64,000 nucleotides of DNA from the NCBI GenBank assembly GCA_964252035.1, contig OZ176202.1; one strand, written 5' to 3'. The DNA is from Podarcis erhardii (Eukaryota). Numbering within the stretch: position 1 is the first letter of the stretch; every line of letters begins with the position of its first letter. The notes below the pieces were generated by a model. That model was not told the DNA's origin, did not search any database, and saw nothing but the letters and a program-made list of their open reading frames with translations. Positions 1,376 to 43,251 of the stretch are shown here, one piece after another. Made by a program: the position numbers and the translations under genes.

Positions 1376-3543
1376 GTATTTTTATGGCTAATCTCTTTGT
1401 TTTTGGCACTGCCATACTTTGAAAACTAAAAATCAGATGATCTGATTATTGATACTGAAACGTTGATACACAACCATTCTGGAAACATAGTTCTATGATG
1501 GGAAAGTCTCAGCATCCTTAACTATAGTCCCCCAGGATTGTTTGGGGGCAGTCATGACTGTTATCAGTGATATAATAACATTTTAAATGTATAATTCAGA
1601 TGTGGTTTAAGTCTGCAGGGGTTATCTGGAATAATTTTGCTTTGGGGTATTCTTTCAAGTAATTCAGACAAGCCAGAGATTGAAACCAGTCTGAATCACT
1701 TGAAATTCTTCCCCTCTACTCAGTAATTCCCACTGCAAATACAAAAATTGCAATAAGTCATCTGTGAGTGACATCTAAATAGCAAGCCAAGCTAAGCTTG
1801 AGCAGTTGAGCCACATCCATTGCAACTGAGCTCGTTGTCTACAAGCCAAAAATAGTGGCATTTCAAAGTTTAAAACAAAAACCATACTGGCAGCGTGTTT
1901 CCACTTAGCAAACAATTAGGAGTGTGGGATTTGCCAGCTTGGCCAATCAGGATCTGTACAAAGACCCATAGAAAAACAAAGAATTAGGGCTAGGAAGCCA
2001 AGCTAGAAAGCAGGATATTGTGAAGCGTGAAGAAGAGAGGCAAGTTCACAGGATTCAAATGATGAGCACACTAGGAGGTATGCAAATTGGCTGGTACTCA
2101 CTTTCAGAGTATTGAAATGTGCTGGCTTATGTGCAAATGAATGACTTCATTCAGATCAATGAGAGCTTCCTGCTAAAGTAACACAATCTGTTCTGGATGT
2201 CTTTGGGGAAGTTATGGACATTATATTCATCTTAGTTTTCCATGCAGCAATTAAAGTATTCATTTGAAAAATGATCAAAACTAACTATATTGCCAATTTT
2301 TTTTTTTAAATGTATTTACACATTTAGGGTTAAAACGAAAAACCAAAGAGTAGATGCTACATGGCAAGCCAATCTAATTCACTCCCTCTGATTAATTACA
2401 TGCTTAGTCTTGGGCATGTTGCAGTTTTATCACACATCAGCCTGAATTTCAGAGTTGTGTATATTTAAGCCCACTGAAATTAAGGAGCTTGATAGTGCAG
2501 TCCTATACATGCCTACTCAGATGTAAGCCACATTGAGTTCAGTGGGATTTACTCCTATTGGGTATATTTTATTTATTTATTTACCTATCAAAATTTACAT
2601 ACCACTTGATTGCAGTAAAACATCTAAGCATTATACATGAAAAATTAAAATTGTAAGATCAAATTCAGTTAAAACAGATATTTAAAAATAGTTAAAATTA
2701 AAAATAGTGATTTAAACACATCTACATGTCTGGCTAGGTCTGGCATATGATTGCTTGTTGCTATAAAAGTTCTTAAGACATTTACTTACCACTGTAAATG
2801 TTAAAAACATTTACCGTTTCTAAAAATGTTGCTTTATAATGTAGTTTGATGTGGGAAATGTCAAGAGGTAACACATGATGTGGCACAATGAAAGGTTTAT
2901 AGTTTGTACCAGACTATAACTGTCACGATCTCCCATATGTGGTTTAAATGTGAACTCAAATGTAGCTTACACATACATTGAATTCTTTCACTATTATCAT
3001 GGTAAATCATGGGCTCTAAAAACAATCTGTAATGAAATGGAACTTGATTAAAAATTATGTATGTGGTAAATAAGGGGAACCACCTAGAGACATGGTTTTT
3101 TTTGTGTGAGGTAGTGTTTTACTTGCATCCATGACATAAATCTTGGTTAGTTCAGTGGAATGAGTTTTGTTATGTTACCCTTGCAAACAACCACCACCAC
3201 CACCTCATGAGACATGGATGGCAAAGCAATGTGAAGTTGCTTGTTCTTTAATATTAAAGCATAAAAGGTACTAGGCCACCCACATGTTCTTTTGTACCAC
3301 AGAGCAGCTGGTGTGGCAGATCTTGCGGTGAATAATTGAAAGCCCTGGGGGAAATTGCAAAGGTCTGATTACCTGATGGCTGATTTAAGAACTTATATTA
3401 TGCTAAATAGGTATATCTTATACTGTGTTAGATATGTGCTGTAGATCTACTGGATTAAATGTGTTTGCTTTATTGCAAGGTCATGTACTCTCCCCAATTT
3501 GGCTTTTCTTGTTTGTTTTTGTTTCTTTGTTTGTTTTCCACAG

Positions 3544-3618
3544 AGGGCAAACCCAAAAAAGGTGTGCAGTACCCATCAACACTTGAATATTCATCTTCCT
3601 CAAACACACCTGTTAAAG
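3544..3618 (+). CDS. VIT: VIT exon (EGKPKKGVQYPSTLEYSSSSNTPVK) ending at a GC donor
   Basis: ttttccacAG acceptor; peptide matches vitrin ESKPKKGVTYPS. Donor read as AAG|GCAAGT at 3619 because the GT at 3625 would join as T|GA (stop). Confidence 0.88.
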
Positions 3619-3641
3619 GCAAGTGTAAGATTTTCTGCTGG

Positions 3642-3643
<2 letters not shown>

Positions 3644-3689
<46 letters not shown>
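3644..3689. repeat. (GT)23 microsatellite directly downstream of a VIT donor
   Basis: Direct observation. Confidence 0.97.
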
Positions 3690-3692
<3 letters not shown>

Positions 3693-4045
3693 GGTTGTGT
3701 TCTTCCATATATAGCTCCACCTATACTATACATCTTACTGCTTTAAGTAGTCATGGTTTTCCCCAAAGAATCCAGAGTCCTCAAATTTGTTAAGTGCGCT
3801 GAGAGTTATTAAGAGGCCGTATTCCCCTCTCAGAGCTTATAGGGACTGGGAGCAAAAGCTGCCATATGAGACTCAGCAACACCATGCCAAGTGTCCAATA
3901 AAGCTGGTAGCAACCACCACACACAAGCACCCCAAAGGAATGTGCGGCTGACACTAAATTCACAGCACCTATAGTTTTGCATCTCTGCAAATAGCAGATA
4001 GCATTTTCTTTGATATTAATTCACTATATTTCTATACTAATATAG

Positions 4046-4267
4046 GAGGTTCCCAACGGAAAGAGTATCAGACAACTGCAGTGCCACTACAAACCACACA
4101 AGGTGCATTTACAACAGCAAAAGCGGCTATCAGGACAATCGAATTGGTCAGCACAACTCCAAAGCCAGCAACAATCCCAACTACAGTCACGACAACCATC
4201 ACTATCCAGGCAACTACTGGTGTAGCTACAAAGCCTCCAGTTGCGATTCACAAAGTCAGGGACATAG
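4046..4267 (+). CDS. VIT: VIT Thr/Pro-rich mucin-like linker exon (GGSQRKEYQTTAVPLQTTQ...HKVRDI)
   Basis: tatAG acceptor at 4044-4045 and AG|GTGAGC donor at 4268; 222 nt, phase 1-1, open, Thr-rich like the vitrin linker. Confidence 0.88.
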
Positions 4268-4515
4268 GTGAGCAAAATGGCAGAGGTCATAGTGGCTTAA
4301 CAATGTGTTTGTGCTATAACAGGAGTGAAGAAATTTCAACCTGTGGGTCTAGTTAGGCCTCCCCAAGCTGTCACTTATAGTGTGACAAGTAAAATCTCAG
4401 CACAGCTAAATTCAAAAGGAAGACTCTGGCATGTGTTCAAGCCAGGTTGTGAATTCATAAAACTCTGAAGTCAAGCAAAGGCTGCAAAGGATTGGATTTA
4501 TAATTTACCTGATTC

Positions 4516-5111
4516 TGTAGGATGGGATATCAGTTTAGTCGACAGTTGGGTGGCCATACCAGGCAGCAAGTCAGTATGCCAAGTTCAATGCCTGAGGGTC
4601 AGTTCACACAACCAAAGTCCAAAATCCAAAGGTCAGGAAACAAGGTTCATGGTCAAGCCAAGTCCAAAGTCCAGTAGTCGGGATACAATACAGAGTCAAA
4701 CCTGAAGCTCAGTCCTGTGGCGGTCCAGAAACACCCAAATCAAGGCCCATCAACATGGGCAGCTGAGAAAAAACAGCCCCTCAGCTCTGCTTCCCTTTTG
4801 TAATTTCCATGCTGATTGCAGCATCTGGGCTTGATGAGGCACGTGACCCTCACCTGCTCCAAGCCTACTTCAGCTGAGGAATCACACCCCGTCCTCCCAG
4901 AGCTAGTTAGCCCCACCTGGTCAAGTAGGGAGCTGGACTGTGGGCCCTTACCTGTCTCAGCCTCCTAGAGTGCCACTCCCGCTGCTCCCTACACCTCAGA
5001 GCTTCTGTATTCATGGGGATAGGGGTCCCTCTGGCTCTGGTAATGGGTCTTGCTGCTGTAGTTCCTGCATTGATGTTCACCCCCTCCCCATCCTCTGCTC
5101 TTACTCTTACA
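4516..5111. mobile_element. Probable solo LTR (Gypsy-like) in a VIT intron
   Basis: Termini TGTAGGA...TCTTACA form a 6/7 inverted repeat with TG...CA ends; flanks ATTC/ATTT are a near 4-bp TSD; internal agtccaaa/ggtcag repeats. Confidence 0.55.
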
Positions 5112-5281
5112 ATTTAAAGAAGGATCATCATCTTCACAGAACAGTGCACTTTGGCCATTTGTTTTCCATCGCCTCATTCTCTGTTTTGCATACTGATTTT
5201 TCTCCTTTTCCATTTGCTATAGTGAGGGGTTCTCTGGTTTGTTCTTAGGGAACTGTTTAGGGAAGATTTAATGTTTAACAG

Positions 5282-5383
5282 AGTATTGTATTTTAATATT
5301 TTGTTGGAAGCCATACAGAGTGGCTGGGGAAACCCAGCTAGATGGGCGGGGTATAAATAATAAATTATTATTATTATTATTAG
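5282..5383 (+). mobile_element. 5'-truncated L2 3' end with (TTA)n tail abutting the VIT exon at 5384
   Basis: ttttgttggaagccatacagagtggctggggaaacccagctagatgggcggggtataaataataaa(tta)n matches the copies at 6420-6470 and 43150-43251. Confidence 0.9.
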
Positions 5384-5434
5384 GTTCTAGCAACGTCCAT
5401 CCAGCTTACTCCTCAGTAGCAGCTGTAGCATCAA
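5384..5434 (+). CDS. VIT: VIT linker micro-exon (GSSNVHPAYSSVAAVAS)
   Basis: (TTA)n-TAG acceptor and strong AA|GTAAGT donor at 5435; 51 nt, phase 1-1, in frame with neighbouring exons. Confidence 0.72.
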
Positions 5435-5964
5435 GTAAGTACAGAGGCAGTGCATTGTCATATCACGACTGCAATCCTAGGAAGCCCAGGGAAATCAGTG
5501 GGCTTATGTCTGATTATACACCATGGGAATGTGTTTAAATGGTCATTGTTTTATCTCTTTCACTAAGGAAAAAGTAGCTTAAGGAAAAAGTAGCTTCAGT
5601 TATCCCTGTTTTGTAAGATGTTCTCCATACCTTCCATCCATGCCATAGAACTACAGTTCCCAAGGTTCCCTGGAAAAAGATAATGACTGTTCAACTAGTT
5701 TGAATCTTTCTTGTGACTAGACCCATCTCCACATAACAGGGGTGGGGAACGTTTTTGGACTTCCATGTGCTGTTGGACTCCAGCTCCTACTAAGCCACAC
5801 TTGCTGAGACTGATGGGAGTTGGAGTCAAACATCTAGAGGGGCACAAGTTCCCCATTCCTGCTAAGTAATATATATCTCTCTGTAATTATTGTTTCATAA
5901 ATCCTATATTTAATCTCAGTTGGTAGAGCCTGAGAATCTTAATCTCAGGGTTATGGGTTCTGAG

Positions 5965-6470
5965 CACAATTCAAAGTGTTGATGCTGACCTTTAAAGCCT
6001 TAAACCAGGCATAGGCAAACTCAGCCCTCCAGATGTTTTGGGACTACAACTCCCATGATTCCTAGCTAACAGGACCAGTGGTCAGGGATGGTGGGAATTG
6101 TAGTCCCAAAACATCTGGAGGGCCAAGTTTGCCTATGCCTGCCCTAAACAGCCTCAGCCCAGTATACCTGAAGGAGTGTCTCCACCCCCATCGTTCTACC
6201 TGGACACTGAGGTCCAGCGCCGAGGGCCTTCTGGCAGCTCCCTCACTACGAGAAGTGAAGTTACAGGGAACCAGGCAGAGGGCCTTCTCGGTAGTGGCAC
6301 CCGCCCTGTGGAATGCCCTCCCACCAGATGTCAAAGAGATAAACAACTATATGACATTTAGAAGACATCTGAAGGCAGCCCTGTTTAGGGAAATTTAGAA
6401 TGATTGATGTTTTAATGTATTTTTAATCTTTTGTTGGAAGCCGCCCAGAGTGGCTGGGGAAAGCCAGCCA
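5965..6470 (+). mobile_element. L2 LINE 3' fragment (ORF2 C-terminus + 3' UTR) interrupted by a hAT MITE
   Basis: With the MITE removed it reads QFKVLMLTFKALNSLSPVYLKE...RAFSVVAPALWNALP...FRRHLKAALF*, then the family 3' UTR running into the N gap. Confidence 0.88.
6006..6141. mobile_element. hAT-type palindromic MITE, 136 bp
   Basis: 16-bp TIRs CAGGCATAGGCAAACT/AGTTTGCCTATGCCTG; 8-bp TSD CCTTAAAC/CCCTAAAC. Confidence 0.9.
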
Positions 6471-6606
6471 NNNNNNNNNNNNNNNNNNNNNNNNNNNNNN
6501 NNNNNNNNNNNNNNNNNNNNNNNNNNNNNNNNNNNNNNNNNNNNNNNNNNNNNNNNNNNNNNNNNNNNNNNNNNNNNNNNNNNNNNNNNNNNNNNNNNNN
6601 NNNNNN
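6471..6606. other. Assembly gap (about 136 N)
   Basis: Run of N where the L2 (TTA)n tail would be expected. Confidence 0.99.
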
Positions 6607-6809
6607 GAGTCTCACGTTGGGCAAAAGATTCTGACATTGCAAGCGGTTAGACTAGATGACCTGTGTGCTTCTATGTTAAAAACTAAAGGATTAGGACAAG
6701 AGTCTCTTACCTCCTGCAGCTATAAAATTATCACTTTTAAAAAGAAATGTCTTTTAAAAATAGTTTTGGGAACTGCAAATAACATTTTCTGTTTTAATGC
6801 ATATTTTAG

Positions 6810-6848
6810 GGCAGGTTCAAGCTGTACAAGGAAGAACCCAGAATCAAG
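6810..6848 (+). CDS. VIT: VIT linker micro-exon (RQVQAVQGRTQNQ)
   Basis: atattttAG acceptor and AAG|GTATGT donor at 6849; 39 nt, phase 1-1, open. Confidence 0.72.
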
Positions 6849-6971: not shown

Positions 6972-7028
6972 CATTCAGAGGCAGTTCCAGCCATGCAAGT
7001 AACAGAAATATCGCTCGACCTAATACAG
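6972..7028 (+). CDS. VIT: VIT linker exon (AFRGSSSHASNRNIARPNT)
   Basis: tatttttaaAG acceptor and CAG|GTAAAA donor at 7029; 57 nt, phase 1-1; size and position fit the human exon ending SSQNRPRADP. Confidence 0.72.
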
Positions 7029-11819: not shown

Positions 11820-12035
11820 ATTATTATTTATACCCTGCCCATCTGGTTGGGTTTCCTCAGCCACTCTGGGTGGTTCACAGCACATGTCAGAACATACTAA
11901 AACATCAAACATTTAAAACTTCCCAATACAGGGCTGTCTTCAGGTGTCTTCTAAAAGTCCAGTAGTTGTTTGTTTACTTGACATCTGAAGGGAAGGTTTT
12001 CCCCAGGGAGGGCTCCACTATTGAGAAGGCCCTCA
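11820..12035 (-). mobile_element. L2 3' fragment, same family as 5965-6470
   Basis: tttataccctgcccatctggttgggtttcctcagccactctggg and agggctgtcttcaggtgtcttctaaa are reverse complements of the family 3' end. Confidence 0.8.
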
Positions 12036-12107
12036 AAAATATAATGGTGTCATCATCTCATGCCCTTTGCATTTAATAACCAACTGTGTCATTATTGATC
12101 ATTCCAG

Positions 12108-19468: not shown

Positions 19469-19982
19469 GCTGTGTGCAGGACCAATGGGTACTATTCCAT
19501 CAATGTGCCCAGTTGGTTCAGCTTACACAAAGTAGTGCAGCAGTTAGTGAAGCGAGTCTGTGACTCTGATCGCCTGGCATGCAGCAAGACCTGTCTCAAT
19601 GCAGCGGATATTGGATTTGTCATTGACGGGTCCAGCAGCGTTGGCACTGGCAACTTCCGCACCCTCCTCCAGTTTGTCGCTAACATCAGCAAGGAATTCG
19701 AGATTTCCGATACAGACACCCGCATTGGAGCTGTGCAGTACACCTACGAACAGAGGCTGGAGTTTGGCTTTGACAAGCACAGAACGAAGCAGGATGTCCT
19801 AAACGCTATCAAGAGAATCAACTATTGGAGCGGAGGAACCAGCACCGGAGCAGCCATCAACTATGCCTTTGAACAGCTCTTCAGCAAATCCAAACCAAAC
19901 AAGAGGAAGATAATGATTCTTATTACAGATGGCAGATCATACGATGATGTCCGGGGTCCAGCTGCAGCGGCACATCAGAATG
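19469..19982 (+). CDS. VIT: VIT inter-VWA linker + VWA2 exon (AVCRTNGYY...DGSSSVGTGNF...ITDGRSYDDV...AAHQN)
   Basis: ctttcAG acceptor and TG|GTAAGC donor; 514 nt; second MIDAS motif DGSSS. Confidence 0.98.
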
Positions 19983-20013
19983 GTAAGCCAGAAGACCCTA
20001 TAAACACCTATTT

Positions 20014-39149: not shown

Positions 39150-39225
39150 CTTAAAAAAGCAGAATCACAGGTTCAGAAAATATTTGTTAAGGCATAAAAA
39201 AGTTAGCTTCCAGGTTGGCCTAAAC

Positions 39226-39362
39226 CAGGCATAGGCAAACTCAGCCCTCCAGATGTTTTGGGACTACAACTCCCATCATCTCTGACCACTGGTCCTGCGA
39301 GCTAGGGATGATAGGAGTTGTAGTCCCCTAAACATCTGGAGGGCTGAGTTTGCCTATGCCTG
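39226..39362. mobile_element. hAT-type palindromic MITE, same family as 6006-6141, opposite internal orientation
   Basis: Identical 16-bp TIRs; perfect TSD GCCTAAAC on both sides. Confidence 0.92.
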
Positions 39363-39649
39363 GCCTAAACTCACAGGACGCTTTTGAACACTTTTACCTC
39401 TACATGCACACTAAGTGTTCCTGACTCCTCCTCTTTGCCCCTCCCCACTTTTTATAAGCCACAGGCAGTCATTTCTTGTTCTGCAAAGTGTCCTTGTAAA
39501 AATCAAACAAAGCATAAAAAAGGACTGTGAAAGAATCAGCAAGAGCTGATTTCAGTGGCCAACCACCAATAGCCTATATACTGTGTAAGGAAAAAGACAA
39601 AAAAGTGGCTCTTGCAAAGCTATTTTATGTGTGTATATACAGTATGTAT

Positions 39650-43043: not shown

Positions 43044-43213
43044 GACTTCAGATGTCAAGGAGATGAGTAATTACATGACATTTAGGAAACATCTGAAGGC
43101 AGCCCTTTATGGTGAAGCTTTTTAAGGTGTAATGTTTTATTATGTTTTTATATATGCTGGAAGTCGCCCAGAGTGGCTGGGGCAACCCAGTCAGATTGGC
43201 AGGGTACAAATAA

Positions 43214-43251
<38 letters not shown>
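43044..43251 (+). mobile_element. L2 3' end with long (TTA)n tail
   Basis: Same family as 6330-6470 (cagatgtcaaggagat...catctgaaggcagccct...gaagtcgcccagagtggctgggg). Confidence 0.88.

Follow-up and report, generated by a model that had tools for sequence, protein, structure and literature searches.

A retroposon 3' end abuts the acceptor of an ancient VIT mini-exon in a lacertid lizard and probably supplies its splice signals

Results

The VIT gene and its linker exons

The window, by which we mean the whole 64-kb stretch of DNA analyzed here, carries the VIT (vitrin) gene of a lacertid on the plus strand. In tblastn comparisons, the window exons are 97.2% identical to the vitrin of Podarcis raffonei, 96.9% to that of P. 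lilfordi, 96.8% to that of P. muralis, 96.4% to that of Lacerta agilis, and 94.6% to that of Zootoca vivipara; the source is thus a lacertid distinct from all five. The vitrins that match a window exon bear PF03815 and PF00092, that is, the LCCL domain plus two VWA domains by which VIT is recognized, and by both tblastn and domain content the gene is an ortholog of annotated vitrins. Correspondingly, the window ORFs run from the end of the LCCL domain (about 1240-1374) through a T/P-rich linker and two VWA domains to the terminal ...NSQPRN. The exons were searched individually (for example, the VWA2 exon at 19469-19984), with one base carried over for translation across the junction before the mini-exon.

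Three linker exons frame the locus described here. A 222-nt T/P-rich exon at 4046-4267, supported by the sequence, by tblastn to P. muralis vitrin, and by mRNA-like contigs of related organisms, ends in a g that is the first base of a split Gly codon and is followed by the donor GTGAGC. It is followed by a 51-nt mini-exon in phase 1 at 5384-5434, which encodes (G)SSNVHPAYSSVAAVAS and is placed by protein homology and contigs. Its acceptor AG lies at 5382-5383, as judged by protein homology (RDIG/SSNVHPAY..., with slashes marking junctions), and its donor GTAAGT lies at 5435-5440. The next exon, 39 nt long at 6810-6848, encodes (R)QVQAVQGRTQNQ and is placed by sequence and protein alignment.

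Two further features of the linker region were observed. The VIT exon at 3544-3618 ends in ...GTTAAAG and is followed by GCAAGT, making intron 3619-4045 a GC-AG intron, with a (TG)n tract at about 3635-3702 after the GC donor; in three related organisms, contigs have this intron removed, with a joint of about 3618 to 4046 (3616>4044 as listed, 3 bases being ambiguous). A 57-nt exon at 6972-7028, with the acceptor ...tttaaAG and the donor GTAAAA, encodes AFRGSSSHASNRNIARPNT, and exactly these 19 residues are absent from the X3 and X4 isoforms of both L. agilis and P. muralis, indicating a second cassette mini-exon in the vitrin linker.

The mini-exon is ancient and is annotated as a cassette exon

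Protein homology indicates that 5384-5434 is a genuine and ancient exon. Squamates, crocodilians, turtles, birds, and frogs all retain its peptide, GSSNVHPAYSSVAAVAS, and in 155 of about 184 vitrins the HPAY motif immediately precedes the RQVQ...QG exon. These vitrins come from frogs, a caecilian, a coelacanth, turtles, crocodilians, birds, lizards, and snakes, and were collected by two word searches after the VWA2 exon, used in a representative search, had recovered full-length vitrins. In the frog Pelodytes, 16 residues separate the split G from the R, as they do in the window, indicating that the length, phase, and boundary of the exon are older than the repeat that now precedes it. The X1 isoforms of lacertids read RDIG/SSN(V/I)HPAYSSVAAVAS/RQVQ, and these protein junctions fix both splice sites of the exon, 5384 for the acceptor and 5434 for the donor. 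A degenerate-pattern scan for the mini-exon in metagenome contigs gave no match.

The mini-exon is a cassette exon in lacertid annotations. Its 17 residues are exactly missing (RDIG/QVQ) from the X2 and X4 isoforms of L. agilis and P. muralis and also from P. lilfordi models, and they are retained in all three isoforms of Zootoca. They are also absent from single models of Phrynosoma and Anser, showing that skipping is not exclusive to lacertids.

A 5'-truncated retroposon ends at the mini-exon

The intron sequence directly before the mini-exon belongs to a repeat family. A 19-mer of this element occurs 4 times in the window, compared with 0 expected, and the four copies have a common 3' end, (ATT)n tails, and 5' truncations at differing points, which identifies the element as the 3' end of a non-LTR retroposon (a LINE or a LINE-mobilized SINE). 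MAFFT alignment with the three other window copies extends the homology at the mini-exon back to 5253, and in blastn the copy at 5905-6470 aligns to 5253-5338 with 81% identity (E 8e-16). The element on the plus strand thus consists of a 5'-truncated 3' module body at 5253-5363, with a conserved A/T-rich box before the tail, as seen in the alignments of the three copies, and an (ATT)6 microsatellite tail at 5364-5382 (TRF: period 3, 6.3 copies, 100% matches), which occupies the position of the U-rich tract and would act as one. A g at 5383 directly follows the (ATT)6.3 array, and the intron ends in ...ATTATTAG. The initial annotation had described a (TTA)6 tail that ends in TAG exactly at the start of the mini-exon, and this holds (the TAG ends at 5383). 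It had also labelled the element L2, here a putative assignment, and had begun it at 5282, which is too short: the alignments show that gatttaatgtttaacAG is repeat, not flanking sequence. Its proposal that the tail serves as both tract and AG stands for the tract position, which the tail does occupy; the AG/G itself is most likely ancestral.

The other copies lie at 5905-6470 on the plus strand (the longest, whose tail runs into an N block at 6471-6606), at 11820-12040 on the minus strand (5'-truncated), and at 43047-43250 on the plus strand (5'-truncated, with a long (ATT)n tail). Window copies are 77-81% alike in blastn, and the element at the mini-exon, compared with the majority of the other copies, has 20 differences in 107 sites (about 19%); this divergence suggests an old insertion, with no calibrated date. 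A head-like segment at 5905-5996 of the longest copy was seen by eye, and the contigs of four runs join head to body (5996>6141), leaving out a MITE at 5997-6140. ARAGORN and Rfam called no tRNA for the head-like segment, no window copy extends to a reverse-transcriptase ORF, target-site duplications are not evident at the other window copies, and a literature search gave no name for the family.

The MITE inside the longest copy is palindromic and about 144 bp long, and a second MITE copy lies at 39221-39370. The copy at 5997-6140 gives sub-threshold hairpin matches to several miRNA families on both strands (mir-5408, 54.9 bits with a gathering threshold of 90; mir-584, 52.2 bits with a threshold of 80), and the very high contig depth over it indicates a highly repeated element. 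Just past the N block, 6607-6665 is part of another, distinct SINE-like repeat (...ttagactagatgacc...).

Acceptor contexts around the element

All 4482 AGs in the window were scored with a rough matrix covering the pyrimidine tract at -20 to -5 and positions -3 and +1, and the scores are approximate. On this scale, the real mini-exon acceptor (first exonic base 5384) scores -0.8 (88th percentile), like the neighboring VIT acceptors at 4046 (-1.1, 86.5th percentile) and 6810 (+0.2, 91.5th percentile). Two sites just 5' of the element, the best in the region, score far higher: the AGs at 5221-5222 (first exonic base 5223) and 5247-5248 (first exonic base 5249) both reach +5.7, within the top 0.83%. 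Sites as good as these occur about once per 1.7 kb in the window, so that the probability of finding one right at the insertion's edge by chance is low (about 1-2%). Together with a branch-like ctgat motif and a long pyrimidine tract, they suggest that the ancestral 3' splice region, since displaced, may lie at 5199-5248 on the plus strand. Splicing at 5249 would be in frame and would reach a TAA after 7 codons.

The pentamer TTAGG occurs at 5245-5249 and again at 5380-5384, and the first occurrence could be the 5' copy of a target-site duplication of 5 nt that includes the old AG/G. As a duplication it is statistically weak, being 5 nt long with 3 of these coinciding with the TTA phase of the tail. 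The octamer TTAGGGAA occurs twice, at 5245 and 5257, so that a small duplicated piece of the element is an alternative origin for 5245-5252. GTTCT(T)AG, present at 5241-5248 and 5384-5390, was considered as a target-site duplication and rejected, since it would leave the old exon with no AG.

Upstream of the acceptor there is an AG-free zone at 5342-5381 on the plus strand, all of it retroposon-derived, which is the predicted branch-point region; the last AG before the acceptor lies at 5340-5341.

Contigs of related organisms fit splicing at 5384

Contigs of four runs were aligned to 3400-6470, the runs having been chosen for a word share of about 0.2 that matches the exonic fraction. By this word share the contigs are mRNA-like, and they come from relatives of the source species that differ by about 4-5% in the mini-exon. 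Organisms A and C each provide one long contig (3869 and 2833 nt) over 4044-4269 with 8-11 differences, and the same contigs lack the upstream intron, the joint 3616>4044 with its 3 ambiguous bases being equivalent to 3618>4046. The alignment extends two bases beyond the end of the exon at 4267, and these bases are GT, which fits the next exon starting with GTTCT (5384), not AGTAT (5282) or GGAAC (5249). In the bin 5357-5459, the mean depth in both runs corresponds to 45 nt at exactly the depth of the A and C contigs; 5352-5390 was masked as repeat in the contig alignment, and the 45 nt thus match 5391-5435. From these piece ends and depths, we infer the joint 4267>5384 in the contigs of the relatives. 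In the bin 5151-5253, the contig depth is zero in all four runs.

The internal AG and the open frame

A further AG lies inside the element at 5280-5281 on the plus strand, where this copy reads CAGAG whereas the other copies read TGTTT. An exon extended from 5282 would gain 102 nt in frame. The initial annotation had regarded this AG as an acceptor-like copy of a duplicated ancestral AG, had placed the landing site of the element there, and had proposed a tandem-acceptor switch that adds 34 residues to the linker. The reading frame was described correctly: 5282-5383 is 102 nt long and stop-free in the VIT phase, and its translation gives 34 residues with two Cys. The AG, however, lies within the element and so is not a duplicated ancestral AG, and its context is weak, with a score of -5.9 (60th percentile of window AGs) and a weak pyrimidine tract. 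The landing of the element at the ancestral 3' splice site is probably right, given a motif in the top 1% at 5230-5248 and TTAGG at both ends, but the place was not 5280-5281. As to the switch, and to the suggestion of comparing junctions 4267>5282 and 4267>5384, the contig end of the relatives at 4269 fits 5384 alone, although contigs are unable to prove the absence of a rare splice form, and no annotated vitrin carries the extension. What annotations do contain as an alternative event is skipping of the entire mini-exon. Seven to eleven peptide words of the extension were sought, and it was found in 0 of about 184 vitrins, among them 13 lacertid models (four isoforms each from L. agilis and P. 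muralis, and five from P. lilfordi).

The open frame is shared by the family. All four copies are without stops in one common frame over the last 100 nt or so (...CWKPPRVAGETQPDG...LLLL), at 5282-5383, 6407-6470, and 43116-43250 on the plus strand and 11820-11930 on the minus strand, and only 3.9% of shuffled versions of the 102 nt lack a stop. Since none of the four copies has a stop in the homologous part, openness belongs to the family, and the local part is limited to a 1-in-3 match of phase. The common frame may derive from composition or from descent from a coding 3' end.

Discussion

The explanation that we consider probable overall is that a retroposon came to lie against the acceptor of the ancient mini-exon and supplies its splice signals, with AG/G being ancestral. 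An old, 5'-truncated retroposon 3' end (at least 131 nt, 5253-5383, sense strand) lies in the last bases of the VIT intron, with the mini-exon still being spliced at the conserved boundary 5384. Bases -1 to about -130 are now retroposon, and the nearest upstream AG is 42 nt away. The first AG downstream of the branch point is usually the acceptor. Because the last AG lies at 5340-5341 and the zone after it is all retroposon, we infer that both the branch point and the U-rich tract must be retroposon-derived. The conserved A/T-rich 3' box would provide the branch point, predicted in 5342-5365 where ATAAT-like motifs occur, and the (ATT)n tail would provide the tract. On its sequence, the site appears to be a TE-derived 3' splice site, in which the retroposon fills the tract and the putative branch region of an acceptor that, by the proteins of orthologs, is in use.

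The old 3' splice site would have read ...gtttgttcttAG/GTTCTAGC. Its AG/G beside the exon would have been kept, either via a TTAGG target-site duplication or because the tail was primed on a TTA-like target, and the original tract and AG would now lie some 135 nt farther upstream, at 5230-5248. The AG at 5280-5281 would then be a weak internal AG, and the 34-residue frame a by-product of the open frame of the family. As a hypothesis, the insertion may also be a cause of the skipping of the mini-exon. The full sequence of events, in which the element inserted into the 3' splice site, TTAGG regenerated AG/G, the signals were replaced, and the exon became a lacertid cassette exon, is a less probable reading, put forward tentatively.

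Displacement of the old signals also raises the possibility that they are still used. The acceptors at 5223 and 5249 score far above 5384, the product of splicing at 5249 would soon meet its TAA, and exon-skipped isoforms are present in lacertid annotations, so the displaced acceptors might still be chosen in many transcripts, which would then include retroposon sequence and a premature stop. The main effect of the insertion would in that case be to reduce productive VIT output or to favor skipping, and the replacement of signals would not be neutral. We regard this as unlikely: the four runs show no contig depth over 5151-5253, although contigs lose NMD targets and rare forms, and the skipped models are also found in Phrynosoma and Anser.

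It is also conceivable that the AG was created de novo, the tail having reached or overrun the previous acceptor and TAG/G having arisen by T>G within ATT-ATT, which would make both tract and AG retroposon-derived; ATT ATT A-GG is one or two changes away from a continued ATT repeat. This course of events would require that a boundary conserved to the base from frogs to lizards, with the same exon length and phase, was lost and then restored exactly, and the retention of the original AG/G is simpler, which makes de novo creation quite unlikely. That the element comprises 5282-5383 alone between duplicated ancestral AGs, both of them used in a lineage-specific switch adding 34 residues, is highly improbable despite the stop-free 102 nt in frame and the cAG at 5279-5281, because family homology continues through 5280-5281 to 5253, the tract is weak (60th percentile), the extension occurs in none of the vitrins, lacertid models included, the contig end of the relatives reads GT rather than AG, and the open frame belongs to the family.

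The preferred reading, a retroposon supplying the signals of an ancestral acceptor, has parallels in known systems. In the exonization of antisense Alu elements, which Sorek in 2002 and Lev-Maor in 2003 are said to have described, the poly-U of the Alu reportedly serves as the polypyrimidine tract. Exonization of Alu is also treated in PMC2330237 and PMC2639721. As there, U-rich simple sequence of a retroposon would stand before an AG at VIT and function as the 3' splice-site tract. The two cases differ in that VIT has as its tract the (ATT)n tail, in sense orientation, of a retroposon from squamates, and in that the VIT exon is not TE-derived: it is ancient, and its own signals appear to have been displaced.

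Effects on a neighboring exon offer a second comparison. In canine HCRTR2, a SINE insertion reportedly leads to exon skipping; unlike it, the VIT insertion appears to be fixed and old, not pathogenic. Intronic repeat insertions have been found to shift a flanking exon from constitutive to alternative splicing (Lev-Maor et al. 2008, PMC2533698). The VIT locus resembles both this work (PMC2533698) and the canine case, with a SINE-type insertion near the 3' splice site of an exon that is a cassette exon in lacertid annotations. In the Alu mechanism of PMC2533698, two inverted copies must pair as dsRNA, whereas the two copies flanking the VIT mini-exon share one orientation, so that this dsRNA mechanism is not directly applicable. 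The locus also resembles tandem alternative acceptors, both NAGNAG and longer in-frame pairs, in having two AGs a multiple of 3 apart with the frame open, but its upstream AG is weak, 102 nt away, inside a repeat, and without evidence of use.

The squamate tRNA-SINEs Squam1/Sauria, Squam2, and Squam3 are built of a head, a body, a LINE-derived region, and a simple-repeat tail (PMC10702118). The longest window copy is similar to these Squam SINEs in its head-like segment at 5905-5996. Their tails are An, (AC2T3)n, (TA3)n, and (CT2)n, with lengths of 190-350 nt (PMC10702118), and the family in the window has (ATT)n.

The VIT case is a single-locus example of a known phenomenon, the supply of 3' splice signals by a TE, and its twist is a putative one: an acceptor preserved by a target-site duplication together with a branch point carried by the retroposon. 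Splicing usually fails when an insertion falls this near a conserved acceptor. One that is old and tolerated would be a natural experiment in which the 3' box and microsatellite tail of a retroposon replace a branch point and a tract, and the locus would offer a concrete example in which a target-site duplication has kept a splice site intact. If the replacement of signals is true, each copy of the family would be a ready-made module of branch point and tract that lacks just the AG. For the gene itself, the insertion is a candidate cause of lineage-specific skipping of a 17-residue segment of the vitrin linker.
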